Sequence record: OQ921725.1
Direction: 5' to 3' (one strand)
Length of the DNA: 64,000 nt
In this document: piece by piece, positions 5,004 through 60,086 of the stretch
Position numbering within the stretch: position 1 is the stretch's first letter
How the letters are laid out: every line of letters begins with the position of its first letter
Made by a program: the position numbers and the translations under genes
Notes under the pieces: generated by a model
What the model saw: only the letters and a program-made list of their open reading frames with translations
Databases searched by the model: none
What the model was told of the DNA's origin: nothing

Positions 5004-5015
5004 TGGCCCAGGCCA
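5004..5015. promoter_or_regulatory. Palindromic operator TGGCCCAGGCCA, 5 nt before -10 TAGGCT
   Basis: One of 10 intergenic copies. Confidence 0.7.
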
Positions 5016-5030
5016 TGTAGTAGGCTGTGG

Positions 5031-5612
5031 GTGAACCAAGTTGATGTTGGTTCACCCCTCGGAAAGGGTGAAGAGATGGTTGTGTCTGTGGGGCCCATCG
5101 CTCTGGCGCGGCCCGGATGGGGACTGAAGGAGGGCGCCGTCACGTCGCTCGTGTCGAACGACTCGGGAGGCAGGCCGGACGTCCTCTGCGCGCAGATGCT
5201 GCTGAACGCGGCGATCTGCGGAATGAAGGTGCTCGTGCTTCTGCCGGGGCTCCGGTCCGACGACGAGGTGTGGTCCTCGGTCGGCCAGATCCTGGGCGAC
5301 GGGGACGGGCGCGTGGCGGCCAAGGAGATGCGCCATCTGCGACTCGTCATGTACGCCTCCGGCACCGGCCGGGAGCACGTCAACAAGGCTGAGCTGGTGT
5401 ACGCTCCTGGACTCAGCCCCTCCGAACTCGGCCGCCTCAGCGATGAGACGACGGCCCCGATCCTGACCCTCGCCGACCTCGAAAGCGAGACGGCGAAGCG
5501 GCTGTCCAGCGAAGTGATCCGCGTCGGCGGCGACACGATCGTCTACGACGCCGAGGGCTTCGAGGTTCCTGTCGTGTTCGACCCGAGCGGTCCGGTCTAT
5601 CGCCCGGCATGA
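5031..5612 (+). CDS. Degenerate DnaB/RecA-like ATPase domain with broken Walker A
   Basis: WGLKEGAVTSLVSNDSGGRPDVLCAQMLLNAAICGMKVLV aligns to GGMRLGQFIVIAGRPGHGKTTVGAQVARNVAHQGMATEI of DnaB. Confidence 0.55.
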   Translation: MNQVDVGSPLGKGEEMVVSVGPIALARPGWGLKEGAVTSLVSNDSGGRPDVLCAQMLLNAAICGMKVLVLLPGLRSDDEVWSSVGQILGDGDGRVAAKEMRHLRLVMYASGTGREHVNKAELVYAPGLSPSELGRLSDETTAPILTLADLESETAKRLSSEVIRVGGDTIVYDAEGFEVPVVFDPSGPVYRPA

Positions 5613-5675
5613 TGGTCGTCGCACGCCCCGCTACCGGTGGGGCGTACGCGGCGCCCGGTGAGAGAGGTTGTGCGA

Positions 5676-7202
5676 ATGGCACGAGGGTCAGGACTCAGGA
5701 ACGTACTCGCGGCGCTGGACAGGAGCGGAAGCCGGGTCAAGCAGCACGGTGGGTACTACACCGCCCAGTGCCCGGCACACGAGGACCGGAACGCTTCCCT
5801 CAGCATCACCCAGGGCGAGAAGGGCGCGGTGCTCAACTGCCACGCCCGGTGCGCCACCGACGACATCCGTATCGCGCTCGACCTCAACTGGCCCGACCTG
5901 TTCGACAACGGCGGCCAGATGGGGGACGAGGACCGCCAGCTCGCGGCCGACCTGTGGATGCCCTGCCAGAAGAACGGCTGCGGCGGCCACAAGTCGGCCG
6001 AGTATCGGTACTCGGACGAGAACGGGAACTTCCTCTACGCGGTCGCGCGGTGCTCGCGCAAGGGTGACGGCTGCCCGCAGCCGTTCGCCCAGTGGGTGCC
6101 GGACGCCAGCAAGAAGTTCGGCAAGAAGTGGGGCCTGCCCTCCTCGGTCCGGCGGGTGCTCTACAACCTGGCGAAGGTGATCGAGGCAGCGAAGGCCGGG
6201 CGCCGGATCTGGCTCATGGAGGGCGAGAAGGACGCCGACCGGATGAGGCGGGACTTCCCCGACGAGGCGGTGACGACCATTGTCTCGGGGGCGGGCAAGT
6301 CGAAGTGGCGGCTGGAGTACGGCCGCTACTTCAAGGGCGCCTCCGAGGTGATCATCGTGGCCGACTGCGACCGCACCGGCCTGGAGTTCGCCGAGGAGGT
6401 GCACAAGCACCTGAGCAATGTGGTGACCAAGGTCAAGGTGGTGTGCTCGCCGCTCATGGCCGACGGCGCCGACTTCTCCGATCACCGTGATCACGGATTC
6501 GGTCTCGACGAGTTCGAGATCGTGCCCTTCACGCCGATCAAGAAGCGGCCCGAGATGATGATCCTGGTCGAGGAGGAGCACCGCGAAAAGCCGGTGGTGT
6601 TCAGCGGTTTCAGTCAGGAGTCCGTCGAGCGCAGCCTGGTCGGATCGATTCTGCGGTACGGCCACTCCTACGGGATCGCCGAGGTCGATATCCAGACCGA
6701 CAGCCGCATGAACGTGATCATCAAGGCGGCTGCCCGGCTGGCCCGGCAGGAGAACGTGATCACGCCGGACATGGTGGCCGCCGAGGTCGAGGAGATGGGG
6801 GTGAGCACCTTCGAGAAGGTGCTGCCCTATGCCCTCGAACTGGAGGCGGTCGCCTTCGACGACACGACCAAGCCGCTCGTCGCGGCGCGCATCCTGCGGG
6901 AGCGCACCATGCGCCGGATGCTGGCGCTCGTCAGCCGGGCCACCGAGTCGGCGGCCCAGGATGAGAAGAGGCCGCTGGACCAGATCCTGGCCGAGGTCGG
7001 CCGGACTGCGGAACGGATGAACGAGGAGTACGTCTCGCTGGAGCGCGAGTACTGCGAACCGGTCGGCGACGTGTTCACCGGGGACGTCCTCGAAGAGATC
7101 GTCATGATGGAAGAGATCGAGCAGGAGAAGACGAACGTCACCCCGATGCACCCGAAGAAGCAGGGTGTGACGTACCGGCCCAGGGCGGCCCAGGGAAGCT
7201 GA
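5676..7202 (+). CDS. DNA primase (CHC2-type Zn finger + Toprim) with C-terminal DnaB-N-like domain
   Basis: AQCPAHED...NCHARC, LMEGEKDAD, IVADCD, GADFSD; C-terminal ESVERSLVGSIL. Confidence 0.9.
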   Translation: MARGSGLRNVLAALDRSGSRVKQHGGYYTAQCPAHEDRNASLSITQGEKGAVLNCHARCATDDIRIALDLNWPDLFDNGGQMGDEDRQLAADLWMPCQKNGCGGHKSAEYRYSDENGNFLYAVARCSRKGDGCPQPFAQWVPDASKKFGKKWGLPSSVRRVLYNLAKVIEAAKAGRRIWLMEGEKDADRMRRDFPDEAVTTIVSGAGKSKWRLEYGRYFKGASEVIIVADCDRTGLEFAEEVHKHLSNVVTKVKVVCSPLMADGADFSDHRDHGFGLDEFEIVPFTPIKKRPEMMILVEEEHREKPVVFSGFSQESVERSLVGSILRYGHSYGIAEVDIQTDSRMNVIIKAAARLARQENVITPDMVAAEVEEMGVSTFEKVLPYALELEAVAFDDTTKPLVAARILRERTMRRMLALVSRATESAAQDEKRPLDQILAEVGRTAERMNEEYVSLEREYCEPVGDVFTGDVLEEIVMMEEIEQEKTNVTPMHPKKQGVTYRPRAAQGS

Positions 7203-7204
7203 CA

Positions 7205-7216
7205 TGGCCCAGGCCA
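7205..7216. promoter_or_regulatory. Palindromic operator TGGCCCAGGCCA, 5 nt before -10 TAATCT
   Basis: Repeat family. Confidence 0.7.
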
Positions 7217-7282
7217 TCTGGTAATCTCAACAGAAGGAAACGGAGCCCCGGTTGAGAACCGGGGCTTTCGGAAGGAGACGAC

Positions 7283-7504
7283 GTGGCACGCAAGGGACGC
7301 GAGAAGTACTACGAGGATCTGCTGGAGGAGGCAGAGTCCCCGAAGGAGCGGTTCGAGGTTCTGCGCAGCAGGCTGCTGGCGGACGTCAAGCGCCTGCCCG
7401 TCGAGCTGCGCGACGGCGCCTACGCCAGCGCGGCCGATGCGCTGAAGAGCGTCATCGAGGCCATCGACGACGCGATCGAGGACATCCGGCCGGTGGGCGT
7501 ATGA
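7283..7504 (+). CDS. Hypothetical protein
   Basis: RBS AAGGAG, GTG start. Confidence 0.75.
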   Translation: MARKGREKYYEDLLEEAESPKERFEVLRSRLLADVKRLPVELRDGAYASAADALKSVIEAIDDAIEDIRPVGV

Positions 7505-7893
7505 GGATCGACGGCACCCGCCTGGACCTGCGCACCATGGCCGACCGGATCAACCGCAAGCCGCTGATCGGCGGCCGTCGGCACCTTGGAGTCGGCGGCG
7601 ACATGGTCATCGTCAGCGAACTCGGCCACCCGGACCAGGCGGGGATCGGCATCGGTACGCCCGGTCCGTGGGTGACCATCCACTGCATCACGCGCGGGTA
7701 CGACGAGCACATGTCGCCCATCGACCGGGACGGCTGGCTGGACGTCGCCGCCCTGACGCCCTGGCGGGAGTACTGGCTGGAGCTGGATCCGCTCGGCGGT
7801 GTCAGGGTGGAACGAGCCGACTCGGACGGCAACAGCTTCCGCTGGTACTGGCCGCTTCCCTCTGATTCCTGGAGGTGGATCCAGTGCGGGTGA
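7501..7893 (+). CDS. Hypothetical Trp-rich protein
   Basis: ATGA overlap; 3' part of ORF 7252..7893. Confidence 0.7.
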   Translation: MRIDGTRLDLRTMADRINRKPLIGGRRHLGVGGDMVIVSELGHPDQAGIGIGTPGPWVTIHCITRGYDEHMSPIDRDGWLDVAALTPWREYWLELDPLGGVRVERADSDGNSFRWYWPLPSDSWRWIQCG

Positions 7894-8309
7894 ACACCGG
7901 TCGCCTCGACCTGAAGAGCCTCAACGTCGGCGAGCCCTGCATCATCACGACCGGCGGCTCGTCGATCAAGCTGGTGCACACCGGCCAGACCATCGAGATG
8001 GGCCTGTACCTCACAGGTGTCGGCATGCAGCCGCTCGCCGACGACCGCCTGCTGCGGATCGAGCACGTCAAGGGGTTCCCCGTCTACTGGCTGCACCTGG
8101 GCAAGCTGGCCCCGAGGCGGCTGTACACGGTTCTCGTGACGAGCCCGCCCCGGATGCACGACGAGGCCATGGGCCCCCGCTTCAGCGGGATGCCGGGCTG
8201 GCAGATCAGTGACGACACCCCAGGAAGCGGCCCGCAGCCGGGCGAGATGGAGTCCGGCGGCCGGAGCTGGAACCTGCTGGGCAAACTGCTGGGAAGGAGG
8301 GGAGACTGA
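7890..8309 (+). CDS. Hypothetical protein
   Basis: GTGA overlap, coding bias. Confidence 0.7.
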   Translation: MNTGRLDLKSLNVGEPCIITTGGSSIKLVHTGQTIEMGLYLTGVGMQPLADDRLLRIEHVKGFPVYWLHLGKLAPRRLYTVLVTSPPRMHDEAMGPRFSGMPGWQISDDTPGSGPQPGEMESGGRSWNLLGKLLGRRGD

Positions 8310-8773
8310 TGGACCGCAGAGAGCTGCTGTTCCAGGACGAGTACTGGGTGGACGGTCCGGGCCGGATCCACCGGGTTGCCGACATGGACATCAAGCACGC
8401 CCAGAACACCTACCGGTACCTGACCATGGCCGACCGGGCGCTGGCCCACCTCGACCTTCTGATCTCCTCGTACCTGCTGGGGCCGGGCCCGAGCGGGGAC
8501 GCCGCGACCGACGCCTACGAGGGCGAGCTGGCCCGGCTGGAGGCGGCGCGCAGCAACCCCATCGGCTGGATCAAGGAGCTGCCCTTGCTGGTGGCCCTCC
8601 AGGAGCGCGGCTGGGGCAACCCCGAACCGAAGCCGAAGCCCCGGCACCGGGAGCTGCTGGTGGTGCTCAAGGTCAAGATCGGTCACGACGCTGACGCGAA
8701 TCCGGTCGAATGGGACATCGAAGAGGCAGTGAAGGCGCTGCCCTACGACATCGAGATCACCGACGTGCGGTGA
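8309..8773 (+). CDS. Hypothetical protein
   Basis: TGATG coupling, RBS GGAGGGG. Confidence 0.75.
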   Translation: MDRRELLFQDEYWVDGPGRIHRVADMDIKHAQNTYRYLTMADRALAHLDLLISSYLLGPGPSGDAATDAYEGELARLEAARSNPIGWIKELPLLVALQERGWGNPEPKPKPRHRELLVVLKVKIGHDADANPVEWDIEEAVKALPYDIEITDVR

Positions 8774-8792
8774 TCCGGAAAGGCGGAACGAC

Positions 8793-19611: not shown

Positions 19612-20436
19612 GTGATGGCCACGCCGAACGGCATGACCACGGCCGAGCTGGACGACAAGCTCCGCCAGCACTTCATCAGCGACAAAGATCAGCTCGACCT
19701 TGCCGGGGCCGGAGCCGTGTACCTGACCGAGGTCACCGCGCCCGGCCACTCCGGGCGCCGGGCCGACGCCGTGCACATCGGACTGTGGGCTTCGCGCGGC
19801 GCCGGGATCGTCGAGGTCTGCGAGCTGAAGGTGAGCCGCGCCGACTGGCTCCGGGAGCTGAAAGAGCCGAAGAAGGCCGAGGCGTGGTGGCCATACTGCA
19901 ACATCTTCTGGCTGGTCGTGCCGCACGAGGGGATCGTGCAGGACGACGAGCTGCCCAAGGGCTGGGGCCTGATGATGCCCGGCACGCGGGGGCGCCGGTT
20001 CAAAGTGCTCGTGAAGCCGGAGGAGCGGGAGGCGCAGATCACGCCGGGCCTGCTCATCACCCTGCTGAAGAACACCGAGACCACCCGGACGAACGCGCTC
20101 CAGAGGCAGGAGCGGGAGCTGCGGCAGAAGTTCCACGACCAGGAGCGGCAGGCGCAGCGCCAGCGGGGCACCTTCAACGAGAAGGACCGGCGGCGCCTCG
20201 AACTCATGGACCGCCTGGAGGCCGCTCTGGGGGTCGGCCTGGCCGAGTACTCCTGGGAGGACAAGCTGGAGCCGGAGGGGGCTGCTGAAGCCCTTCAGGC
20301 CCTCGTCCAGGGGCGCCTCCGCCTGGACAGGGCGAAGGATCGGGCAGAGTCTGCCGTCAGGGAGTTGGACCGGGCCGCCAGGACGGCGCAGGAGACGGCC
20401 GACAGGCTGCGCAAAGAGATGGGGATCAAGCGATGA
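19612..20436 (+). CDS. MmcB-like PD-(D/E)XK nuclease-fold protein with coiled coil
   Basis: RRADAV...ELKVSRADWLREL.EP.KAEAW. Confidence 0.75.
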   Translation: MMATPNGMTTAELDDKLRQHFISDKDQLDLAGAGAVYLTEVTAPGHSGRRADAVHIGLWASRGAGIVEVCELKVSRADWLRELKEPKKAEAWWPYCNIFWLVVPHEGIVQDDELPKGWGLMMPGTRGRRFKVLVKPEEREAQITPGLLITLLKNTETTRTNALQRQERELRQKFHDQERQAQRQRGTFNEKDRRRLELMDRLEAALGVGLAEYSWEDKLEPEGAAEALQALVQGRLRLDRAKDRAESAVRELDRAARTAQETADRLRKEMGIKR

Positions 20437-23156: not shown

Positions 23157-23330
23157 GTTCTCTCCCTTCCTTGTCCCCGGAGCACGGGGATCATGATAGG
23201 CATCATATCGCCGTTGACCTGCACGTGTCACTCTCGGTTCATCGTTCACCGAATGACGTGAAACCATAGAACTCTCTGTGATGCAGATCGCCAAGACGAG
23301 CTTGCGGCAAACATGTTGATGTGGATAGAC

Positions 23331-23342
23331 TGGCCTAGGCAG
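23331..23342. promoter_or_regulatory. Operator variant TGGCCTAGGCAG overlapping -10 TAGACT of the terD operon
   Basis: Repeat family. Confidence 0.6.
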
Positions 23343-36900: not shown

Positions 36901-36936
36901 TTCCTCTCCTTCCGCGCACGGGAGTCTATCATCAAT

Positions 36937-36948
36937 CGGCCTAGGTCA
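36937..36948. promoter_or_regulatory. Operator TGACCTAGGCCG (minus), 8 nt before -10 TAGACT
   Basis: Repeat family; preceded by hairpin 36966-36994. Confidence 0.7.
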
Positions 36949-37002
36949 GGCTGGAAACACAGCGAAGGGGCGACCCCGATCCGGGGCCGCCCCTCGGGTG
37001 GC

Positions 37003-37879: not shown

Positions 37880-37891
37880 TGACCTAGGCCA
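37880..37891. promoter_or_regulatory. Operator TGACCTAGGCCA overlapping minus-strand -10 TAGTGT
   Basis: Repeat family. Confidence 0.75.
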
Positions 37892-37916
37892 CACTATCTG
37901 ATCGAACTCGCCCTGG

Positions 37917-39587: not shown

Positions 39588-39785
39588 TCAGTTGATCGTG
39601 AAAGACCCGAGGGTGACGGACTTCGCTCCCTTGTCGGCGAGCGTTTCCACCACCAGGTCGGGGTTCTTGGCGAAGTTCTCCCGGTCGATCTCCGCCCGCT
39701 CCCCAGGCGTGTTCGCCCCGGGGTACAGGTCCGGGTCGACCTCGTACTCGAAGACGACGGTGACCCGGATGATCTCCTTGCTCAT
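39588..39785 (-). CDS. Hypothetical protein
   Basis: ATGA coupling. Confidence 0.65.
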   Translation of the reverse strand: MSKEIIRVTVVFEYEVDPDLYPGANTPGERAEIDRENFAKNPDLVVETLADKGAKSVTLGSFTIN

Positions 39786-40243
39786 ACCGTCGCCTCCGGC
39801 GCATCGAGTCCGTAGGCGTAGACCACGGAGAAGTTGTCGGCCAGCCAGAACTTCACCCGGCTGGCCACCAGCGCCTTCGGCAGGCCGCCGAGCCCGCAAC
39901 CGAGTGCGGGCAGTGCGACCGAGATCAGGCCCGTGGTGTCCAGGTACGTGGCCAGTCCCGAGAGGCCGAGATCGATGTCTTCGATCCGGGAGTTGTCCCG
40001 CCAGTGCCGCTTGGTTGCGATGCTCAGGATCCGGCGGCCGTCCGGAAGGACTGCGTCGTGCACCAGGCCGGGCTTCATGCGGCCCTCCCGGCAGAAGGTG
40101 ACGTACTCCCCGACCTGCGCGGGCCAGCGGTCCCGGAACTGCCGGGCCAGCCCGGCGCCCGGCACCCCGACGCAGTTGACCGGGTTGACCAGCCCCTGAG
40201 CCTGCGAATCCAGCAAGTTCCCCTGCGTCCAGATCAGTGGCAT
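39782..40243 (-). CDS. Macrodomain ADP-ribosyl hydrolase, DarG/TARG1-like
   Basis: GNLLD, LVNPVNCVGVPGAGLARQF, ATKRHWR.NS, ALPALGCGLGGL. Confidence 0.9.
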   Translation of the reverse strand: MPLIWTQGNLLDSQAQGLVNPVNCVGVPGAGLARQFRDRWPAQVGEYVTFCREGRMKPGLVHDAVLPDGRRILSIATKRHWRDNSRIEDIDLGLSGLATYLDTTGLISVALPALGCGLGGLPKALVASRVKFWLADNFSVVYAYGLDAPEATV

Positions 40244-40445: not shown

Positions 40446-40765
40446 CAGGCATCCACCTTCCATGTGTCGACGCTGGCCTCGCTCAGCATCTCCATCCAGT
40501 CGCCGATCACGATCATCCAGTGACCCTCGATCGTCAGGCCCGGGTCCTCGGCGTGAAGACCGAAGCCCTTGTTCCGGGGCGCCCTCACCATCGGGCCCAT
40601 CCGGTACGAGGCGACTGGCCGTAGGCCGTGCGGCGTGTGCCGCTGCACGTCGACCAGGCTGGAGTACGTGAATCGCCCGGTGTCGGACTCCCGGTGGAGG
40701 GTGATGTGCAGCAGCGTCCCGTCCTGTGCCGGTACGTCGATCGCTGCGTTGTCGGGGTGGTTCAC
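40445..40765 (-). CDS. Hypothetical protein
   Basis: 3' part of ORF 40445..40999. Confidence 0.65.
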   Translation of the reverse strand: MNHPDNAAIDVPAQDGTLLHITLHRESDTGRFTYSSLVDVQRHTPHGLRPVASYRMGPMVRAPRNKGFGLHAEDPGLTIEGHWMIVIGDWMEMLSEASVDTWKVDA

Positions 40766-41046
40766 GAGGGCTCCATCCTCTTCGTCTCCATGCGGCCCGA
40801 CGCCAGGCTGCGCTCCAGGATCACGGCGTACCGGATCCGGTCGTCCTGCCTGCGGCCGTACGTGGTGGCGATCAGCGCCGCCTGCTTGCTGGTGTGCTGC
40901 TCCAGGAGGAGTCGGTGATCGCCGTCCCAGCGCAAGCACAGGGACTTGTCCGTCAGCTCCTCGCGAAGACTGTCCCAGCGTTCGCGGTCGCCGCTCCATG
41001 AAGCCCGTAACTCATCGGCCAGGGCTTCGAATTCGTCCTCGCTCAC
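40762..41046 (-). CDS. Hypothetical protein
   Basis: RBS GGGAGAG after operator. Confidence 0.65.
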   Translation of the reverse strand: MSEDEFEALADELRASWSGDRERWDSLREELTDKSLCLRWDGDHRLLLEQHTSKQAALIATTYGRRQDDRIRYAVILERSLASGRMETKRMEPS

Positions 41047-41062
41047 GTCTCTCCCATCCGAA

Positions 41063-41074
41063 TGGCCTAGGTCA
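41063..41074. promoter_or_regulatory. Operator TGGCCTAGGTCA, 3 nt downstream of minus-strand -10 TATCGT
   Basis: Repeat family; preceded by hairpin 41087-41120. Confidence 0.75.
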
Positions 41075-41134
41075 AAGACGATACGCAGAAGGGGCCCCGG
41101 CCGCAACCGGAGCCCCTTCTCTGTGACCTGTGGG

Positions 41135-44996: not shown

Positions 44997-45000
44997 CGGA

Positions 45001-47638: not shown

Positions 47639-47653
47639 GCTTCTCCCTTTCCT

Positions 47654-47665
47654 TGACCTAGGCCA
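47654..47665. promoter_or_regulatory. Operator TGACCTAGGCCA overlapping minus-strand -10 TACGAT
   Basis: Repeat family; preceded by hairpin 47677-47702. Confidence 0.75.
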
Positions 47666-47727
47666 TCGTACAGCGAAGGGGCCCGCCGTCAAGCGGGCCC
47701 CTCGGTATCCGGCCAGCCTCGGCCGGA

Positions 47728-49506: not shown

Positions 49507-49821
49507 TTACTTCTCCTCTTCCGGATGGGACTCGCGCGCCCACGGCCTGCCCCAGTTGTCCAGCAGGTACGTGAGCGTGTCCCGCAGCTCGGTCATGCGC
49601 TGCTTGTCCAGGGCCAGGTCGTCGCAGCCGTCCCTCAGTTCCCACGGCTGCGGGTCCTGGCGCGGGTCGACGAAGTACAGGTTGTCGGACCCGTCCGCCT
49701 GGTACATGTCGAAGGTGTACTCGCTGTGGCCGTAAGGCCCCAGGTACGTCCACTTCAGGTCGAGCGCGCCCGGCTCGGGCCGCTTGCCGACCTCCTCGGG
49801 CTTCCTGCCGAAGGCGCTCAC
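49507..49821 (-). CDS. Hypothetical protein
   Basis: GTGA overlap. Confidence 0.7.
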   Translation of the reverse strand: MSAFGRKPEEVGKRPEPGALDLKWTYLGPYGHSEYTFDMYQADGSDNLYFVDPRQDPQPWELRDGCDDLALDKQRMTELRDTLTYLLDNWGRPWARESHPEEEK

Positions 49822-50147: not shown

Positions 50148-50149
50148 GC

Positions 50150-50470: not shown

Positions 50471-50473
50471 GCC

Positions 50474-51027: not shown

Positions 51028-51102
51028 CCTCTTCTCCCTTCCGTTTCCACCGGGCTGACCCGGACTCCACGGGGCCCCCATCGGAGGCCCCGCAGGGCTC
51101 GC

Positions 51103-51510: not shown

Positions 51511-51514
51511 TTGA

Positions 51515-51961: not shown

Positions 51962-51964
51962 GTT

Positions 51965-52267: not shown

Positions 52268-52276
52268 AGGCGTCCC

Positions 52277-52630: not shown

Positions 52631-52721
52631 GTTCTTCTCCTTCTCCGTACTGACGGGACTCGTCAGGGCGGTCCTGTTCCGCCTACCGGGAGCCCTTCCC
52701 AGGGGCCCGGTTTCGTCCGTG

Positions 52722-53030: not shown

Positions 53031-53041
53031 CCCGGATCTCC

Positions 53042-53389
53042 TCAGAAGTCGTGCGGGTAGTCGGTCGGCATCGGGTCACCGGGGCCGATCAGCTTGGGCG
53101 GGTGCACGTAGGACAGGCCCGCCTGGTTGTACCGGTACAGCTCGACCTTCTCGGCCCGGTCGTACTCCTCCCGGCGCTGGTTCCAGTCGGGCCGCTCCAG
53201 CTCCAGATCGGCCTTCGGAATCTTCATCGCTTCGCGCAGGGACTCGTTGTAAGCGTTGCGGTACTCCACCGCCCGGCCGTGCCCCTCCTCCGTGTTCGGG
53301 AAGCGGTACACCGTGTGCACCTGGCCCGGCTCACCGGCCACCACGTCCACAAACTCGGCCGTGCGCCGGTACTCGTCCATCTGCTGCAT
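53042..53389 (-). CDS. Hypothetical protein
   Basis: RBS GGAGGAGG. Confidence 0.75.
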   Translation of the reverse strand: MQQMDEYRRTAEFVDVVAGEPGQVHTVYRFPNTEEGHGRAVEYRNAYNESLREAMKIPKADLELERPDWNQRREEYDRAEKVELYRYNQAGLSYVHPPKLIGPGDPMPTDYPHDF

Positions 53390-53438
53390 GCCGTTCCTCC
53401 TCCGGCCCCGGGGTTCTCCCGGGGCCCTCGAATCCTAC

Positions 53439-53450
53439 TGACCTAGGCCG
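53439..53450. promoter_or_regulatory. Operator TGACCTAGGCCG, 1 nt upstream of minus-strand -10 TAGGAT
   Basis: Repeat family. Confidence 0.7.
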
Positions 53451-53465
53451 TGAAGTTCCAGTTCT

Positions 53466-53810
53466 TCAGGACTGTTTGCCGAAGAGTCCGCCCCATGGGC
53501 CGTGCTTCTCGTGCAGCTCCCGGTCCAGTGCGTCGGATGCGAACTCCCACGCACTCAGGAAGTTCTTGATCCAGCCCTCGGTACGGCCGGACTCCTGCGC
53601 CATCAGCCGCTCGGTCTCCCCGCCCTCCGGGTCCCGCTCGTCATCGGGGATGTCGAGCGCGAGGTCGAGCGCCCGGTCCAGCAGATCCAGCAGGGCGTGA
53701 ACCTCGGGAACTGTGAGGCTGAAGAGCGGGGCCAGCCGCTGCTCGATGATCTCCTGCCGGGTCCCGGCGACCGATTCGCCGGGATCACAGGTGCAGCTCA
53801 GCTCAGCCAC
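53466..53810 (-). CDS. Hypothetical protein
   Basis: Coding bias. Confidence 0.65.
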   Translation of the reverse strand: MAELSCTCDPGESVAGTRQEIIEQRLAPLFSLTVPEVHALLDLLDRALDLALDIPDDERDPEGGETERLMAQESGRTEGWIKNFLSAWEFASDALDRELHEKHGPWGGLFGKQS

Positions 53811-54339
53811 GCTGGACCACCGTGCACCCGCACGGCGAGACCGTCGGGTTCGTGCAGACCTGGCGGTCCTTCTCGGCCAGGCCCCACGCGCCGGAGGCCG
53901 CCGTCCAGCCCCGCTCGTACACGGTCCCGGAGTCGTGCACCCGGTACATGTTGTTCGGGTGGTACGGCTTGACCAGGGAGTGGACGTAGATGTCCGACCC
54001 TCCCTTGTGTCCCAGCAGGGCGTCCCGGATCAGGCCGATGTCCATCTCGTCGAGCCACTTCAGCCGGTCGGCGGGCGACTTGCGGCCCTCGGTCAGCGTC
54101 TCGTACAGCTCGGTCACCCGGGCCTCGTCGCCGTCGATGTCGATCCACGCCTTGATCCCCCGGCTGCGGTCCTCCGGGAAGACGAAGTCGGAGATCCAGC
54201 AGGCGAGCTGGTCGTCGCCGTACTCGAACGCCTCGTGGTGCGGCGGGATCTTCTCCCCCTCGGCGATGCCGCGCAGGAAGTCGGCCAGCCGGGGCTCGCC
54301 CCAGATCCAGTGGATGATCCGTACCGTCGTCTCGTTCAT
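53803..54339 (-). CDS. Hypothetical protein
   Basis: RBS GAGGGAGAAG; 3' part of ORF 53803..55563. Confidence 0.7.
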   Translation of the reverse strand: MNETTVRIIHWIWGEPRLADFLRGIAEGEKIPPHHEAFEYGDDQLACWISDFVFPEDRSRGIKAWIDIDGDEARVTELYETLTEGRKSPADRLKWLDEMDIGLIRDALLGHKGGSDIYVHSLVKPYHPNNMYRVHDSGTVYERGWTAASGAWGLAEKDRQVCTNPTVSPCGCTVVQRG

Positions 54340-54353
54340 CTTCTCCCTCTCCT

Positions 54354-55325
54354 TCAGCCCTCGGCTCGGGCCTTGTCGACTTCCTTCACGGCCTTGTCCC
54401 GCAGCGGGACGATCACCGCTTCGATCTGCTCGGCGGTCGGTTCGGTACCGACCTCCAAACCGTTCTCCTTCCAGGCCACGGCCCGGCCCAGATGCTGGAT
54501 GTTCCGCTCGTGGGCGCCGTCGTCGTCGCCCCAGGCGTATGCGTACCAGCACTCCCGCTTCAGCTCGGAGCGGGCGGTGCGCAAGGTCTTCACGACCGAG
54601 CCCTTCTGCTTGCCGTCGCGGCCCATCTCGTCCCGCAGGGGCGTGCCGTCGGGCTGCGTGATCGCGTTCAGCGCGGCCTTGGCCTTCTTCTCCGCCCGGC
54701 GCTTGGCCTCCGCCTCCCTGGCCTCGGCCCGCTCGATCTCCTCGGAGGTCAGCATCACCGACTTGGGCACGGCCACGTTCTCGCCCTTGTCCCGCCGGGC
54801 AACCGGTGCGTCCGGGTAGCAGATGGTGCAGGCCCGCTCCCCGGCGGCCTCGACGATCTCGGCCATGATCTTCCCGGAGTAGTCGATCATCCAGGAGAAC
54901 CGGGTCGGGAACTCCCCCCGGTTGCACGACGAGCAGTTCATCGAGCTGTGCACGTGCCCGTCGGTGACCAGGTAGGCCCGGGACCATCCGCCCCGGCGGC
55001 CGAACTCGTTCTCCAGCTTGGCCAGTACGGTGCCGTCCAGTTCGGCAACTGCACCCTTCGCCCGGTTCACCCGGTCGAGCGCCTTGCGTCCCCGCTCGGT
55101 CCCGGCCGCCTTGTCCTGCACCTCCTGGTGACCCAGGCGCCACGTCTGTGCGCTGACCCGGCGGTCGCCCACGGCGTAGTGCACCTCGTTCCAGGCGGCG
55201 TACACGTCCTCCAGCAGCTCGTACCGCCGGTCCCAGACGGCGGCGAACAGCTCGTCCACCTCCGGCGGGGTCATGCCCTTGAGCTGCTGCGGGGTGGTCT
55301 GTTCGGCGTCCCTGATCGTCTTCAC
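54354..55325 (-). CDS. Metal-binding phage-type protein
   Basis: GHVHSSMNCSSC...ACTICYPDAP. Confidence 0.8.
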   Translation of the reverse strand: MKTIRDAEQTTPQQLKGMTPPEVDELFAAVWDRRYELLEDVYAAWNEVHYAVGDRRVSAQTWRLGHQEVQDKAAGTERGRKALDRVNRAKGAVAELDGTVLAKLENEFGRRGGWSRAYLVTDGHVHSSMNCSSCNRGEFPTRFSWMIDYSGKIMAEIVEAAGERACTICYPDAPVARRDKGENVAVPKSVMLTSEEIERAEAREAEAKRRAEKKAKAALNAITQPDGTPLRDEMGRDGKQKGSVVKTLRTARSELKRECWYAYAWGDDDGAHERNIQHLGRAVAWKENGLEVGTEPTAEQIEAVIVPLRDKAVKEVDKARAEG

Positions 55326-55400
55326 GCTTCTCTCTCCTTCCGTCCGGTGTGCACTGGGCGCCGGGAACCCGTGGACCCCCGGCGCCTCGAACGCACCGGC

Positions 55401-55844
55401 TCAGAACCGCTTGCCGTCCCAGTCGATGAACTTCTTCGGGTCGTACGACCGGATCCAGGCGAGTGCCGCCGCCTCGGCCACGGCCACGCGCTGCTCGTCC
55501 GTCCCGGGCCCGATGAACGAGTCCAGCGACTCGTACTTGATCTCCGACCAGGTCGGGTCCCACTCGTCGGCATCCCCGGCGGCGTCGTCGTCGATCTCGA
55601 ACCAGACCTGCGACTCGATCCCGAGGTTGCCCAGGTCCGGGCCGTAGCCCATGTGGACCTCGATCGATCCGACCTTCGCCTCGATCGGCCGCTCGGGGGC
55701 GTGGGCGTAGGCGTACACCGTGACCCGGGCGCCGGGGTAGTCCGGGTTCACGAACCGGACGCTGGCCGCCTTCCCGATCTGCGTGTCACCGCCCACGTCG
55801 CCGTCGTCCGACCAGACCTGACCGTGCTGCGTCCACTCACCCAT
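55401..55844 (-). CDS. Acidic hypothetical protein
   Basis: RBS GGAGAGG. Confidence 0.75.
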   Translation of the reverse strand: MGEWTQHGQVWSDDGDVGGDTQIGKAASVRFVNPDYPGARVTVYAYAHAPERPIEAKVGSIEVHMGYGPDLGNLGIESQVWFEIDDDAAGDADEWDPTWSEIKYESLDSFIGPGTDEQRVAVAEAAALAWIRSYDPKKFIDWDGKRF

Positions 55845-55872
55845 GATCTTCTGCCTCTCCGTCGTCCTGGTC

Positions 55873-56094
55873 TCAGTCCCGGGGGCCCGGCTGCTGCGGG
55901 ACCTTCGGCGTCTGCGGCGGGGGCGTCTGGGGCCCCGGCTGCTGCGGGATGCGGCCCGTGACGACGGGCGTGGCCAGCCGGTTCACGGTGCACGGGTTCG
56001 AGCACTGCGACGTGCACGAGTGGTTCCATTCGGCGCGGATCTCGATCGTCCCGTTCAGCTCCGGCGCCCGTTCCTTCGTGAGCGTGAGGGTCAC
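55873..56094 (-). CDS. Small protein with HSC...C...C and Pro/Gln tail
   Basis: RBS AAGGGAG. Confidence 0.65.
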   Translation of the reverse strand: MTLTLTKERAPELNGTIEIRAEWNHSCTSQCSNPCTVNRLATPVVTGRIPQQPGPQTPPPQTPKVPQQPGPRD

Positions 56095-56110
56095 GTCCCA
56101 CTCCCTTCTC

Positions 56111-56479
56111 TCAGTGCCTGACGGCCTCGGTCCAGCTCTCCCGGGTGCGGATCAGCGTCCCCTCCCGGTCGAACTGAAGAATGTCCACTTGGTTCTCGTT
56201 GAGGAACTTCCCGTCCAGGGAGTCCCGTACGGCGGTCGCCTTCCCGGCGACGATCTCCTCGCCGTCCTTCATGCGGATGGCCTCAACGAGGTACCGCATG
56301 GGGTAGTTCTCGGCAGCACCCGGAACCCCGCACATCCAGGTCCAGTGCAGCAGCGCCGCATGTGCGGCCCATGTCCCACTGGCCCCGTACCGGAAGGTGA
56401 TCAGCCCTTCCAGGGTCTGTGACCACGCCTCCCCGTGCCTCCGGGTGAACCGCACCCGCCAGACGTCCTGTTCGTGCAT
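56111..56479 (-). CDS. Hypothetical protein
   Basis: RBS AAGGGAG. Confidence 0.7.
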   Translation of the reverse strand: MHEQDVWRVRFTRRHGEAWSQTLEGLITFRYGASGTWAAHAALLHWTWMCGVPGAAENYPMRYLVEAIRMKDGEEIVAGKATAVRDSLDGKFLNENQVDILQFDREGTLIRTRESWTEAVRH

Positions 56480-56539
56480 GTCTCTCCCTTCCGGGGGGCG
56501 ACCGGTCTCCCGGCCGCCCCGAGCGGCGCCGTCGGCCCG

Positions 56540-56665
56540 CTACTTCTTGTCGGCGTCCATCTTCTGCGCGTTCTCCGGGGTGACCGCGATGGCCTCCGGC
56601 GGCGGCTGGTCGGCCGGGACCGGAACGTTGATCATGTCCGGCACCTCGGGCTTCTCCTGCGTCAT
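56540..56665 (-). CDS. 41-aa Pro-rich peptide (not in track)
   Basis: MTQEKPEVPDMINVPVPADQPPPE...; RBS GAGGGAG. Confidence 0.55.
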   Translation of the reverse strand: MTQEKPEVPDMINVPVPADQPPPEAIAVTPENAQKMDADKK

Positions 56666-56829
56666 GCTCTTCTCCCTCTTCCGAGTGCAGTTCTCTGTCA
56701 TCGGGATCGTGCTGTCGCTCGGCAGGTCAGCCGTTCAGCCTCCGCAGGATCTCGTCGGCCTCGCGGCCCGCCTTCTCCCACTCGTCCTCGCTCATCACGA
56801 TCACCTCCCTTCCGCTCACACCGCCCACG

Positions 56830-56881
56830 AGCGGCGCTCTCGGGCCCCCGGCCGAAGCCGGTTGCCCTGGGGCGCATCCCG
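56830..56881 (-). repeat. Intergenic hairpin module, copy A
   Basis: After stop: CGGGATGCGCCCCAGGGCAACCGGC-TTCG-GCCGGGGGCCC-GAGAGCGCCGCT. Confidence 0.6.
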
Positions 56882-57229
56882 TCAGGCCGGAGCGGAACCG
56901 CTGCGGATCAGGCTGGACACGAAGTCCAGCAGCTCGGCCGCGTCGGTCGGCAGCTCACCGCCCGGGGCCAGCTTCTTCAGCAGCTCGACCGCCAGGTGCT
57001 CGGCCTGGTCCCGGCGCAGGGCGGTCACCGGGGCCGTGGTCCCGTAGTAGCCGGGGTACGGGAACGCGAAGTCCCCACTCCGGCACAGGCCGCCGATGAT
57101 GATGTCGAAGCTGTGTCCCTGCATGCTCCGCTCGTTGCGCTGCCGGACGTGCCGCTCCGCCGCGTTCAGGTACTCCTCCGGCGTGGCCACCCACGCACGT
57201 CCCTCTTTCAGGCCCTCACTCGTCAGCAT
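56882..57229 (-). CDS. Hypothetical protein
   Basis: RBS GAGGGAG. Confidence 0.7.
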   Translation of the reverse strand: MLTSEGLKEGRAWVATPEEYLNAAERHVRQRNERSMQGHSFDIIIGGLCRSGDFAFPYPGYYGTTAPVTALRRDQAEHLAVELLKKLAPGGELPTDAAELLDFVSSLIRSGSAPA

Positions 57230-57256
57230 CTTCTCCCTCTCCGTCCCACTCGATCG

Positions 57257-57309
57257 AGCGGCACTCCCGGGTGACCGGCCGGAGCCGGTCACCCTAGGGC
57301 GCATCCCGT
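57257..57309 (-). repeat. Intergenic hairpin module, copy B
   Basis: ACGGGATGCGCCCTA-GGGTGACCGGC-TCCG-GCCGGTCACCC-GGGAGTGCCGCT. Confidence 0.65.
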
Positions 57310-57633
57310 TCAGAGGTTCGCACCGCACAGGTGGCACGCCTTGCCGTCACCGTGCGCACCCCGGCCGTGGCCGATCCCGAACCGGCTGACCGTCTTCTTC
57401 AGCCGTTCCTCCTTCACGCCGACCAGCGGGTTGTTCCCGACGCTGTACAGCGTGTACGCCACCAGGGCCGGGCCGCCGTCCTCGATCACGGCGTCGTACC
57501 CCCGCACGTAGCCGCTCAGGAACGGCAGGCGCAGGGCCGACGGAGATCCGGGGTCGATGTCGATCGTGACGTGGTCGCCGTCCTGGTAGGCCAGCTCCGT
57601 ACCGTCCGGCAGAGTCCAGTTGTTGCCGCTCAC
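57310..57633 (-). CDS. Hypothetical protein
   Basis: RBS GGAGGAGG. Confidence 0.7.
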   Translation of the reverse strand: MSGNNWTLPDGTELAYQDGDHVTIDIDPGSPSALRLPFLSGYVRGYDAVIEDGGPALVAYTLYSVGNNPLVGVKEERLKKTVSRFGIGHGRGAHGDGKACHLCGANL

Positions 57634-57938
57634 AGGGGGTCCTCCTCCACCGAAAGGCTGGTACCGAAGCTGATCGTGCACTCGTACGTGCCGGGGTCGC
57701 TCCAGTTCCCGGACTGCTCGAACTGGAGCACCAGGCCCGGCGCGTTCACCTCCTGACACAGGGCCTTCGCGTCGGCCATCGCCAGGGCACGGGCGCGAAC
57801 GGTCACGTACGTCCCCTCGTTCGGGCCGGTCACCTTGATGTCGAAGCCGAACCAGTACGGTCCGACGTGACCCGGCGGCCTGCCCCGCAGGACCCGGGTC
57901 ACCGTGAGCGGGGCGATCTCCCGCGTTTCCCGCTTCAC
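57630..57938 (-). CDS. Hypothetical protein
   Basis: GTGA overlap. Confidence 0.65.
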   Translation of the reverse strand: MKRETREIAPLTVTRVLRGRPPGHVGPYWFGFDIKVTGPNEGTYVTVRARALAMADAKALCQEVNAPGLVLQFEQSGNWSDPGTYECTISFGTSLSVEEDPL

Positions 57939-58525
57939 GCCTTGGCCTCCTCGGCGTACGGCTCGAACGCCTCGCGGGCCATCTCCTCGGCCGACTCCCG
58001 GCCGATGTAGCCCCAGCACGAGTCGACGTGCTCCCACTCGCGGGTCTCGTCGTCCAGCTCCGGGTCGTCGCGGTCCTCGGCATCCCGGGGGATGCGGGTC
58101 ACGTCCTTCTCGACGATGTGCCCGTACACCTCACCCTCGGCCCACTGCTGGTACTCGTTCTGCTCCACCTCGATGAGCTGGGCGGCCGACAGTGCCGTCT
58201 CGGCCAGCTTGTCGGGCATCACGTACCACAGCGACCAGGCGCCGTTGTGCGGCCGGTGCTCGACGACGGTGGCACCGTGGAAGATCCGGGCCCACCGGGT
58301 GAAGACCGGGACCGCGTCCACGTACCGGTCCTCGATCCGCTCCCAGCCCTCGGCCAGCGGGCCGCCGTCCTTGTCGACGTCGATGTACCGCTGACCCTTC
58401 GGCGTGATCACGTTCGTCAGGTTGCAGTCCTGCTCGGTACGCGGGTTGCAGTCCTGCGAGTCCTGCTGAACAACCAGGCGCACCCGGTACCGGCCCGCCG
58501 TCTCCAGCACGTCCATCTCGGTCAT
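57935..58525 (-). CDS. Acidic conserved phage/plasmid-type protein
   Basis: EYQQWAEGEVYG.IVE...DSCWGYIG motif. Confidence 0.8.
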   Translation of the reverse strand: MTEMDVLETAGRYRVRLVVQQDSQDCNPRTEQDCNLTNVITPKGQRYIDVDKDGGPLAEGWERIEDRYVDAVPVFTRWARIFHGATVVEHRPHNGAWSLWYVMPDKLAETALSAAQLIEVEQNEYQQWAEGEVYGHIVEKDVTRIPRDAEDRDDPELDDETREWEHVDSCWGYIGRESAEEMAREAFEPYAEEAKA

Positions 58526-58560
58526 CCCGTTCTCCTTCTCCGTTCCGGCATCGCCCGATC

Positions 58561-58613
58561 AGCGACACTCCCGGGTTCCCGGCGCTCGGCCGGGAACCCT
58601 AGGGCGTCTCCGC
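58561..58613 (-). repeat. Intergenic hairpin module, copy C
   Basis: GCGGAGACGCCCTA-GGGTTCCCGGC-CGAGC-GCCGGGAACCC-GGGAGTGTCGCT. Confidence 0.65.
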
Positions 58614-59171
58614 TCAGTTGAAGGGCGTCAGCTCCAGTCGCCCGTTCTCCACGACCAGGGGGCGCATCGGCTCCCGGTCGGCCTCGGGGTTGTGCCCCCG
58701 GTCCTCGCACTCGCAGCCCTCGCCGTGCGCGAGGAAGTCGCCGCACCCGTAGCACCAGATGCAGGACGACGGGTCGTCCAGCGGCTTGACTGTGATCCGG
58801 ACCGGCTCACCCTCGACCTCGACCACGAACCGGTCCCCGGCGAACACCTCGTCCCGGAGGATGCCGAGACCGAGGTTCAGGATGCGCTCCCGGCACTCGT
58901 CGAACCCGCAGCACTCGTACAGCGTGTGCGTGGAGCCGTTCGAGTAGATCTCGATCTGCACCTCTTCGCCGTTCTCGGTCTGCCGGGTCAGCTTCACGCC
59001 GTCCCGCCCGACCGGCACGGCGTCGTGCGGGTGCCGTCCCCGGCTCCCGTCCGGGTGCACGTGGACGACCTCGCCGCCCATGTCGTGCTCGACCGTGGCC
59101 AGTTCACCGTCCCCGATCTCGACCCGGTCACCCCGGTCGAACATCTGGATTCCGCGCAGCACCTGAGCCAT
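58614..59171 (-). CDS. SH3-like N-terminus and Cys-rich C-terminus, function unknown
   Basis: FDRGDRVEI...; ECC..C, CIWCYGC...H..GCEC. Confidence 0.7.
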   Translation of the reverse strand: MAQVLRGIQMFDRGDRVEIGDGELATVEHDMGGEVVHVHPDGSRGRHPHDAVPVGRDGVKLTRQTENGEEVQIEIYSNGSTHTLYECCGFDECRERILNLGLGILRDEVFAGDRFVVEVEGEPVRITVKPLDDPSSCIWCYGCGDFLAHGEGCECEDRGHNPEADREPMRPLVVENGRLELTPFN

Positions 59172-59172
59172 G

Positions 59173-59625
59173 TCACTTCTCCTCTTCCGTCACGTCCCAC
59201 GTGAGTAGGAACGTTGCGAACCGGGGGTTATCCGGTCCCTCGTACCGAGCGTTCTCCTTGTTCGCCCATCCGGTGCGCTCCACGGCGGCCGGTGCGTCCC
59301 GGAAGGACCACACCCCGTCGTACTCGCTCCCGCCCACGTCGTTGACCGTGGGCTTGGTCCAGATGGTGTACTCCGTGGCCGAACTGCACACGAAGGCGTA
59401 GGCCCCGGCGTCCGGGGCCCCGGTGCTCTCGTCGGCGGGGCGGATCTGCCGGGTGACCCGGTACAGCGTGTCCCCGGCGCGCTTGTCGCCCGCCACGGCC
59501 GCCTCCCGGCTCTCGTACACGAACGGGCCGATCATGTCGCCGTCCCGCCCCTGTGACAGGTGGACCAGACCCCAGGCCATCCCGGGGTTCGGGGCCCACG
59601 TGTACCGGATCAGTTCCCCTTGCAT
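59173..59625 (-). CDS. Hypothetical protein
   Basis: RBS GGGAG. Confidence 0.7.
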   Translation of the reverse strand: MQGELIRYTWAPNPGMAWGLVHLSQGRDGDMIGPFVYESREAAVAGDKRAGDTLYRVTRQIRPADESTGAPDAGAYAFVCSSATEYTIWTKPTVNDVGGSEYDGVWSFRDAPAAVERTGWANKENARYEGPDNPRFATFLLTWDVTEEEK

Positions 59626-59638
59626 CCCGCCGCTCCCG

Positions 59639-59989
59639 TCAGTAGCTGTAGCCCTCGATGGTGGCCCGCTCGTACGCGCCGCCGTCCGACCTGGTCCACG
59701 AGGACAGCTCGTCGGCGACGTACTCCGAGGCGTCGTTGAAGTTCTTCGGGAACCCCTCGCCGTCCAGGTCGCCGTTCGTGCTGATCACCGCGACGCTGCC
59801 GTTGTTGCCGCTCTCGTCGGTGAAGTCCCGGCCCTTCTCGGCCGCCGCCTTGATCTCGTCGGCGTGCTCGTCCCAGAAGTCGCGCCGGATGACCTCGATG
59901 TACTCCGTGTCGACGGTCCACACGGCCGCCCACGACTCCGTCAGGGCAACGCCGATCTCGTTCTCACCGTCGGTGACGTACGTCCCCAT
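59639..59989 (-). CDS. Acidic hypothetical protein
   Basis: RBS GAGGGAG. Confidence 0.75.
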   Translation of the reverse strand: MGTYVTDGENEIGVALTESWAAVWTVDTEYIEVIRRDFWDEHADEIKAAAEKGRDFTDESGNNGSVAVISTNGDLDGEGFPKNFNDASEYVADELSSWTRSDGGAYERATIEGYSY

Positions 59990-60074
59990 GCTCTTCTCCC
60001 TCTCCGATTCAACTCACCGTCCGACACGGCACGTCAGCGGCCGATCCCGGAGGACCGGCCGCTCCCGAACCCGT

Positions 60075-60086
60075 CGGCCTAGGCCA
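60075..60086. promoter_or_regulatory. Operator CGGCCTAGGCCA overlapping minus-strand -10 TAGTCT
   Basis: Repeat family. Confidence 0.7.

Follow-up and report, generated by a model that had tools for sequence, protein, structure and literature searches.

Palindromic promoter sites of Streptomyces phage Frankenweenie and gp109, a phage-encoded GntR/HutC-type protein, as their candidate repressor

Variants of a 12-bp palindrome recur in front of genes in a 64,000-nucleotide stretch of Streptomyces phage Frankenweenie (record OQ921725.1), and the question addressed here is which protein reads them, and with what effect on the adjoining promoters. The stretch, hereafter called the window, corresponds to positions 124,001-188,000 of the record, a window coordinate being the record coordinate minus 124,000; positions refer to the window unless marked as record positions. 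An earlier note on the window had listed ten copies, described all of them as intergenic and accompanied by -10 hexamers, and interpreted them as the element-wide operator of an element-encoded dimeric regulator, expecting an excess in intergenic over coding DNA. The explanation preferred here, with a probability of about 0.65, is that the palindrome is the operator of gp109, a homodimeric GntR/HutC-type protein encoded by the phage, which would act as a repressor.

Frankenweenie belongs to cluster BM and has a genome of 200,048 bp; about 80% of its genes have no assigned function. According to its genome announcement, the host is S. scabiei RL-34, the morphology is that of a siphovirus with a prolate head, and neither an integrase nor an annotated repressor is present. 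Its relatives Kela, JustBecause, Satis, Quantum, Kradal and EhyElimayoE show about 81-83% identity over the alignable parts, the hosts of the BM relatives being S. scabiei, S. lividans and S. griseofuscus; only 24-57% of the right arm, made up of small, fast-evolving gene cassettes, can be aligned between BM phages. The Satis genome was used as the main comparison sequence for orthologous sites, and distant relatives of the GntR gene were compared over 10-30 kb of locus DNA. Coding and intergenic statistics were derived from the GenBank annotation of the whole record, in which intergenic DNA accounts for 10.5% of the genome and 10.4% of the window. A plasmid origin of the window was considered and rejected, as no megablast match was found in PLSDB and the window is phage DNA. 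An Rfam scan of the window reported 11 tRNAs and nothing else.

Distribution of the palindrome in the genome

All ten 12-mers listed in the earlier note were found at their positions. The strict pattern TGRCCTAGGYCA fits three of them, with 0 expected, the remainder differing by 1-2 bases, while the pattern YGRCCYRGGYCR fits all but the one at 23331. A genome-wide search with YGRCCYRGGYCR yielded 26 matches, 20 of which are intergenic (binomial P = 3.5e-15), the site at 41063 being among the other six; in the window, 9 of 13 matches are intergenic (P = 7e-7). With GRCCTAGGYC, 14 of the 15 matches found in the genome fall in intergenic DNA. The expected intergenic excess is thus present. CTAG is itself depleted in coding DNA: annotated genes make up 89.5% of the genome and contain only 15 of its 60 copies. 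Since any CTAG motif would for this reason look intergenic, enrichment was re-tested inside intergenic DNA alone: in 300 dinucleotide shuffles of this fraction, matches averaged 0.23 and never exceeded 2, compared with 20 observed.

A position weight matrix built from 22 sites was then scored over the whole genome. The scores are bimodal: all 22 sites reach 14.1 or more and are either intergenic or located in a mis-called gene start, and the next values are 13.7 (record 49593, in gp75), 13.5 (in the terminase gene) and 12.4 (record 97690, intergenic). A loose search with TGRCCYRGGYCA, allowing two mismatches, returned hundreds of GC-rich chance matches in genes and was uninformative, whereas the strict patterns and the matrix separate cleanly. 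In the consensus, YGRCCTAGGYCR, CC/GG at ±2 and ±3 is invariant, G at ±5 is found in 43 of 44 half-sites, and -4 is occupied by G or A. An eleventh site of the window, overlooked in the earlier note and conserved in Satis (114799), is located at 633-644 on the minus strand; it reads CGGCCCAGGCCA in the gene direction and lies 59 nt upstream of gp196.

Sites are carried by 22 of the 136 intergenic gaps of at least 45 nt. The two structural-gene blocks, with 14 such gaps, contain zero sites, and every other block has sites. The term element-wide has to be restricted accordingly.

The best-scoring match outside the set, at record 49593-49604 inside gp75, is TGGCCTAGGCAG, the same deviant 12-mer that occurs at 23331, and is followed after about 100 nt by the DNA polymerase I gene; an internal operator and promoter may be present here. 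At the corresponding place of Satis, no match scoring 11 or more was found.

Placement on promoters and conservation

The spacings between palindrome and -10 hexamer reported previously proved exact at all ten sites, and two classes can be distinguished. In one, the stretch from the end of the -10 hexamer to the expected start site is taken up by the palindrome: a single T, the last of the hexamer and the first of the palindrome, is common to both at 23331 (TAGACT), 37880 (TAGTGT), 47654 (TACGAT) and 60075 (TAGTCT), and TATCGT is placed 3 nt upstream of the palindrome at 41063. In the other, the palindrome fills the spacer or supplies the -35 region, and the -10 hexamer follows after 1 nt (53439, TAGGAT), 3 nt (15524, TAGAAT), 5 nt (5004, TAGGCT; 7205, TAATCT) or 8 nt (36937, TAGACT). 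Promoter-like pairs with spacers of 17 and 18 nt are seen at 7205 (CTGACA and TAATCT) and at record 95401 (TTGACC and TAGAGT), respectively. Overall, the offset from palindrome to -10 hexamer spans -14 to +23 nt, with the palindrome on either side. This variable register, together with the two-fold symmetry of a sequence lying on the polymerase footprint, argues for the operator of a dimeric repressor rather than for a promoter element of fixed register.

Five sites had also been described as following terminator-like hairpins. These are exactly 5004, 15524, 36937, 41063 and 47654, where GC-rich hairpins with a free energy (dG) of -22 to -32 kcal/mol were found within 10 nt. Scoring was performed with RNAfold, because an E. 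coli-type scan is too strict for this genome, where it returns one promoter and one of the five hairpins.

Comparison with Satis revealed an orthologous counterpart for 20 Frankenweenie sites. In a motif-anchored, ungapped comparison the 12-mer shows 98% identity, as against 57% and 52% for the two 40-nt flanks and 65% for the 10 nt adjoining it on either side. Each site retains its own variant, such as TGGCCCAGGCCA at 5004 and TGGCCTGGGCCA at 15524, and the deviant site at 23331 and the weak one at record 97690 are found in Satis as identical 16-mers. The offset of the -10 hexamer is constant while the hexamer itself changes (TAGTGT to TAGACT, TAATCT to TAGCCT, TAGACT to TAGGAT). Constant offsets and the retention of individual variants indicate that promoters and palindrome are both under selection. 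Intergenic placement, promoter overlap and conservation exceeding that of the flanks thus support the original notion of an operator for a dimeric regulator encoded by the element, and the operons that it was said to control, those of primase, terD and many small genes, are indeed covered by sites.

Sites of the first class are mostly found on the minus strand. The only one on the plus strand, 23331-23342 (TGGCCTAGGCAG), is located where gp247 and gp248 diverge, in front of gp248 and of gp249, a gene of the TerD family, its -10 hexamer occupying 23326-23331; the identical 16-mer is at Satis 136513. The site at 37880-37891, preceding the start of gp281 by 16 nt, reads TGACCTAGGCCA on the plus strand and TGGCCTAGGTCA in the gene direction; its -10 hexamer (37891-37896, overlapping by one base) is replaced by TAGACT, at an equal offset, at Satis 151154. 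The same two readings are found at 47654-47665, 15 nt before the gp308 start and identical at Satis 160191. The promoter of this gene consists of TTGACG (47687-47692), a 16-nt spacer and TACGAT (47665-47670), and its -35 hexamer lies in the loop of the terminator-like hairpin at 47667-47711 (minus strand, dG -27.8). The site at 60075-60086, upstream of gp339 (Satis 171826), is CGGCCTAGGCCA on the plus strand and TGGCCTAGGCCG in the gene direction, and overlaps the -10 hexamer at 60086-60091 by one base.

The site at 41063-41074, also on the minus strand, is TGGCCTAGGTCA on the plus strand and TGACCTAGGCCA in the gene direction, with its -10 hexamer at 41078-41083; a hairpin (41083-41124, minus strand, dG -31.4) is found upstream, in the annotated N-terminal extension of gp290. 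The earlier statement that all sites are intergenic applies to the other nine, since this one falls within the gp290 coding sequence as annotated (40762-41106), which runs over the operator, the -10 hexamer and part of the hairpin. The start annotated at 41106 lies almost certainly too far upstream, the probable true start being the GTG at 41046, because this codon and its ribosome-binding site (GGGAGAG) come after the palindrome, and the Satis orthologue of gp290 starts downstream of its own site, which is intergenic (Satis 154104). The hairpin preceding the site contains TTGCGG at a position equivalent to that of TTGACG at 47654; in these units, terminator and promoter are physically fused.

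In the second class, the sites at 5004-5015 and 7205-7216, both TGGCCCAGGCCA on the plus strand, surround the primase gene. The first occupies the spacer of the promoter in front of gp202 and of gp203, the primase gene, between a hairpin (4970-4995, plus strand, dG -21.8) ending 8 nt before it and the -10 hexamer at 5021-5026; 12-mer and hexamer are identical at Satis 119596. The second, 3 nt past the primase stop and upstream of gp204, lies between the -35-like hexamer at 7199-7204 and the -10 hexamer at 7222-7227, and at Satis 122256 the same 12-mer is found with TAGCCT at an equal offset. The site at 15524-15535 (TGGCCTGGGCCA, plus strand, identical at Satis 130223) is preceded at a distance of 10 nt by a hairpin (15477-15513, plus strand, dG -28.6) placed after the dCMP deaminase gene, and followed by its -10 hexamer at 15539-15544. 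The operon headed by this site, gp231-gp244, contains the helix-turn-helix (HTH) genes gp240 and gp243. The remaining two sites are on the minus strand and have reciprocal readings. The one at 36937-36948, upstream of gp278, is CGGCCTAGGTCA on the plus strand and TGACCTAGGCCG in the gene direction, with a hairpin upstream (36965-36995, minus strand), the -10 hexamer at 36923-36928 and its counterpart at Satis 150212; the one at 53439-53450, upstream of gp324, is TGACCTAGGCCG on the plus strand and CGGCCTAGGTCA in the gene direction, with the -10 hexamer at 53432-53437 and its counterpart at Satis 166395.

gp109 as the candidate regulator

Four proteins of the window, gp240, gp243, gp247 and gp261, had been put forward as candidates for the regulator; they show sub-threshold HTH matches or none, and nothing was found that ties them to the motif. 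Among the annotated DNA-binding proteins compared with Pfam, gp109, encoded outside the window at record 71,777-72,511 on the plus strand, matches GntR with 30.3 bits (cut-off 27) and UTRA with 54.8 bits (cut-off 23.8); by these matches it is a regulator of the GntR/HutC subfamily, with an N-terminal winged HTH and a C-terminal UTRA domain. Its best sequence matches in PDB are S. coelicolor DasR and B. subtilis NagR/YvoA, at 21-25% identity. The AlphaFold model of an 87%-identical relative (predicted local distance difference test score, pLDDT, of 84) matches DasR, NagR and PhnF with E = 1e-14 to 1e-17, the range being 1e-8 to 1e-17 when HutC effector domains are included.

The palindrome is present in front of gp109 itself, within the 120 bp that separate this gene from the divergent gp108 and at a distance of 22 nt from the gp109 start. 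CGGCCTAGGCCA was found 21-36 nt upstream of the GntR gene in 11 of the 11 relatives examined, with proteins 49-100% identical, namely Frankenweenie, Satis, a 68%-identical relative (NEAU-Y11), a 49%-identical relative and seven relatives from IMG/VR; the flanking DNA of the 49%-identical one is unrelated. The distant loci are syntenic with Frankenweenie 62-81 kb at protein identities of 27-68%, and retain sites upstream of the gp104, gp114 and gp123 orthologues. The NEAU-Y11 locus belongs to a BM-like contig of 185,382 bp (JANCLX010000014) in the bacterial genome assembly of Streptomyces sp. NEAU-Y11, where a ParA/MipZ-type ATPase gene and one more gene are inserted right after the GntR gene; it may reflect the episomal carriage of a BM relative.

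Among more distant homologues, a 43%-identical one has T(A/C)GCCTAGGCAA twice upstream, having lost G at -5, and carries Leu instead of Arg34. Homologues of 39-42% identity are found in integrated elements, on 162 plasmids, mostly of Streptomyces, and on the plasmid-phage pZL12; their recognition helix reads AQTTANR or ATTTANR, and their palindrome is GCTAGTACTAGC or a close variant. Since motif and reading residues are both altered in the distant homologues, protein and site change together. The GntR genes of the unrelated plasmid pSM17C (locus 6909-6920) and of pZL12 (locus 19899-19910) have the same perfect palindrome, GCTAGTACTAGC, upstream, and their proteins are about 38-40% identical to gp109; judged from these sequences, GCTAGTACTAGC is probably the operator of a plasmid clade of TraR/Kor type.

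The residues likely to be involved can be compared with the NagR-DNA structure, in which G-5 and G-4 are contacted by Arg38 and Arg48, respectively, and the wing with Gly69 is inserted into the minor groove. In an alignment at about 22% identity, Arg34, Arg44 and Gly65 of gp109 correspond to these residues, and the site has the matching G-5 and G/A-4. Arg52 of the NagR recognition helix is replaced by Asp48; contacts between Asp and C are frequently inferred in the GntR family, so that a reading of C at ±3 by Asp48 would be a reasonable explanation of the changed base. As to the effector domain, the glucosamine-6-phosphate contacts of NagR are kept in gp109 at Arg133, Arg211, Glu222 and Ala224, in a region where the alignment is weak, and are changed at Thr90, Arg135, Glu145, Ser165-Tyr167 and Tyr228. 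As most of the sugar-phosphate contacts are lost, this compound is not proposed as the gp109 ligand, which is probably different from that of DasR and NagR, or absent.

In the scheme proposed for gp109, each winged HTH of the dimer would occupy one half-site, as in NagR and DasR on the DasR-responsive element (dre), with Arg34 and Arg44 contacting the G-R step at -5/-4 and the Gly65 wing in the minor groove. About 22-23 operators would be located on host-type (HrdB-like) promoters, either at the -10 end and start site (23331, 37880, 41063, 47654, 60075) or on the -35 region and spacer (5004, 7205, 15524, 36937, 53439). Since the operators lie on the promoter core, a bound dimer would exclude RNA polymerase, and the effect we infer is repression rather than activation. 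The regulon would consist of the non-structural operons, including primase, the tRNAs, the TerD operon, many small right-arm genes and gp109 itself, whose own site would mediate negative autoregulation. The promoters would be active on infection and then be shut as gp109 builds up, and the UTRA domain may tune binding via a small molecule.

Several points weigh against this explanation. The residue mapping between gp109 and NagR or DasR rests on alignments of 20-25% identity, and the contact by which Asp48 possibly reads C at ±3, distinguishing the site from the host dre, has to be counted here as well. At least seven further HTH or DNA-binding proteins are encoded by Frankenweenie, including gp164, which has a site before its own gene. 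A strict E. coli-type promoter scan recovers only one of the promoters, and no clear TAnnnT hexamer is in range at several sites (633; record 11283, 75804 and 121477). The operator consensus of the HutC subfamily, NyGTMTAKACNy, has GT and AC four bases apart and a central TA, whereas the core found here, GCCTAGGC, reads GC-N4-GC, T/A being replaced by C/G in 44 of 44 half-sites; the M, TA and K of the consensus do fit this core, and symmetry, spacing and central TA are family-like. The similarity to dre, considered below, would also suit a host protein. The BM genome announcements mention neither the motif nor the GntR protein, and in one of them the phage is described as lacking a repressor. 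Finally, the temporal model is itself one that we infer.

A more far-reaching proposal, rather unlikely on present evidence, is that BM phages, which are classed as strictly lytic, keep about 22 early promoters off by means of a ligand-sensing HutC repressor related to the kil-kor regulators of plasmids; a host metabolite would then govern lytic development, or a quiescent carrier state as an episome would be possible. Hints in this direction are the occurrence of the NEAU-Y11 contig in a bacterial assembly, with its ParA/MipZ-type gene beside the GntR gene, the intact UTRA domain, and the genes for a RelE-like toxin and an FtsK-like translocase in Frankenweenie.

Alternative explanations, related systems and further observations

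Control by another DNA-binding protein of the phage, be it gp240, gp243, gp247, gp261 or, outside the window, gp164, appears improbable. In its favour, gp240 and gp243 have weak HTH_26, LacI and HTH_31 matches, below or at the Pfam cut-off, and belong to the operon headed by the 15524 site, gp243 also matching a PHROG annotated as transcriptional regulator; gp164, an HTH protein, is divergently transcribed and has a site 51 nt upstream of its start. However, gp247, gp261 and gp164 match no Pfam or PHROG family, none of the five comes from a family with CTAG-centred 12-bp operators read through a GG step, no site directly precedes the genes for gp240, gp243 and gp261, and it is in the GntR lineage that motif and recognition residues are seen to co-vary.

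The sites could also be read by DasR of the host, alone or in competition with gp109, which would wire early transcription to N-acetylglucosamine or nutrient status. The 16-bp dre consensus is A(G/C)TGGTCTAGACCA(G/C)T, and the earlier view that the palindrome resembles the site of no host regulator has to be abandoned, since 10 of the 12 positions of the dre core, TGGTCTAGACCA, are matched by the variant TGGCCTAGGCCA, the only differences being at ±3. DasR is moreover known to bind non-canonical sites in vivo, and gp109 itself is DasR-like. The full dre consensus is nevertheless absent: even the best variants reach 10 of 12 core positions, ±3 is C:G in 44 of 44 half-sites where dre has T:A, and the dre flanks, A(G/C)T...A(G/C)T, are unconserved at the phage sites. 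The motif, in addition, follows the phage GntR gene and not the host species (S. scabiei, S. lividans, S. griseofuscus), and changes with the reading residues of the phage or plasmid protein. A reading by DasR is thus given a low probability.

Still less probable is that the palindrome is part of the promoter, read by a phage sigma factor or a factor modifying RNA polymerase, and acting positively. The constant proximity of a -10-like hexamer and the one-base overlap of hexamer and palindrome at five sites would fit, and gp287, an ADP-ribosyltransferase encoded in the regulon, could modify RNA polymerase. A promoter element would, however, hold a fixed register, in contrast with the offsets of -14 to +23 nt on either side of the -10 hexamer, and, being directional, would not be expected to have two-fold symmetry; the Frankenweenie annotation includes no sigma factor or RNA polymerase. 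Equally remote is the view of the terminator-promoter-palindrome units as mainly recombination boundaries for the shuffling of cassettes between BM phages, with regulation secondary: stem-loops at early promoters serve as shared homology for such shuffling in T4-type phages, the units flank the poorly alignable right-arm cassettes (24-57%) and the 12-mers are islands of identity in diverged DNA, but 12 bases are very short for homologous exchange, orthologous positions keep their own variant with no homogenisation, the motif is also found ahead of conserved genes, that of the GntR protein among them, and changes along with this protein, and a role as boundary is in any case compatible with operator function.

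Three further candidates were rejected. The flanks of separate copies are unrelated, excluding a repeated mobile element similar to miniature inverted-repeat transposable elements or repetitive extragenic palindromic sequences. An RNA element was discarded, as Rfam reports only tRNAs and a loopless 12-bp palindrome cannot fold into a useful hairpin. Sites that are retained rather than avoided, and found at promoters only, are at odds with a restriction or methylation target (CCTAGG, GGCC, TGGCCA).

No equivalent emerged from a search of the literature for GntR/UTRA proteins that are encoded by phages and regulate early promoters. By function and structure, the closest known system is that of DasR/NagR with their dre sites. 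Shared features are the winged HTH and UTRA architecture of a dimer-type regulator, a 12-bp, two-fold symmetric site with central CTAG and outer TGG/CCA, the Arg-Arg-Gly reading residues, the overlap of sites with promoters, and the presence of the regulator gene among the targets. The differences concern ±3, T:A there and C:G here, the replacement of Arg52 by Asp48 in gp109, a sequence identity of 21-25%, and a regulator which is encoded by the phage, with the phage's own promoters as regulon.

By descent and context, the closest relatives are probably TraR, KorA and KorSA, the GntR repressors of Streptomyces conjugative plasmids and of actinomycete integrative and conjugative elements, which are of HutC type, autoregulated, and divergent from the tra/spd genes under their control, and whose loss is lethal. 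Here too a GntR/HutC repressor candidate resides on a Streptomyces mobile element, with gp109 divergent from the genes gp108-gp104, and homologues about 40% identical to gp109 are located on the 162 plasmids and pZL12 beside DUF2637, Spd-like and FtsK-like genes. The gp114 orthologue of BM relatives has a weak SpdB_N match and an operator upstream, while Pfam finds nothing in gp114 itself. Kil-kor systems have one or few sites (14-bp repeats in pSVH1; GCTAGTACTAGC in pSM17C and pZL12), compared with about 22 promoters in a virulent phage of 200 kb.

Among phages, the c repressor of Streptomyces phage phiC31 has a palindromic operator at many early promoters, often beside terminators; this phage is temperate, its repressor is not known to be of GntR/HutC type, the repeat is longer and unrelated in sequence, and the early promoters are not known to be sigma-70-like. 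Repressor-stoperator systems are found in mycobacteriophage L5 and in relatives of Streptomyces phage R4 (PMC9283540), and share the use of one phage repressor with many short, conserved intergenic sites throughout the genome. Stoperators are asymmetric sites at which a repressor monomer stops elongation in a single orientation, and the phages that have them are temperate and carry an integrase, whereas the Frankenweenie sites are palindromic and placed on -10/+1 or -35/spacer, no integrase is encoded, and the candidate regulator is a HutC-type dimer.

To our knowledge, almost nothing is known about transcription timing in large virulent actinophages. The regulon gives a map of about 22 probable promoters for the host polymerase, with the corresponding operon boundaries, and a single candidate master regulator. 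gp109 would exemplify a DasR-like protein whose specificity is shifted by one base pair per half-site, a change that would insulate it from the host DasR regulon. That regulon includes roughly 200 sites. If the UTRA domain binds a metabolite, a virulent phage would have an early programme responsive to host physiology. Operator and repressor could serve as an orthogonal switch in Streptomyces engineering, and the promoter set may be useful for developing BM phages against potato common scab.

Some additional features were recorded. Two genes could bear on host takeover or maintenance: gp194, encoding the RelE-like toxin, just left of the window (record 123497-123802), and gp287, encoding the ADP-ribosyltransferase (39782-40243), in a right-arm operon predicted to be under operator control. 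A second CTAG-centred motif, (C/A/T)(A/C)(C/G)CCTAGGGCG, differs from the operator at ±4 (C:G) and occurs in three intergenic copies of the right arm (57290-57301, 58595-58606 and record 193625-193636), each directly past a GC-rich inverted repeat; TAGGGT, which could serve as a -10 hexamer, is the minus-strand reading of two of these copies. In the tRNA cluster, just upstream of gp220, an inverted repeat (CCTAGGTCCGCGAAAT / ATTCGCGGCCCTAGG, 11685-11722) contains two CCTAGG cores unlike the operator. The right end of the genome (record 197,375-200,048) is a non-coding region of 2.7 kb which includes the terminal repeat and is rich in repeats of its own, namely GTGTGACGCAGGTCACA in two copies 245 bp apart, four copies similar to CTGACCTGCGGAAAC, and arrays of GAGCGGGAGCG. 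The terminal repeat of Satis contains the half-dre-like sequence TGGTCTAGGCCA, at 406 and 186059.

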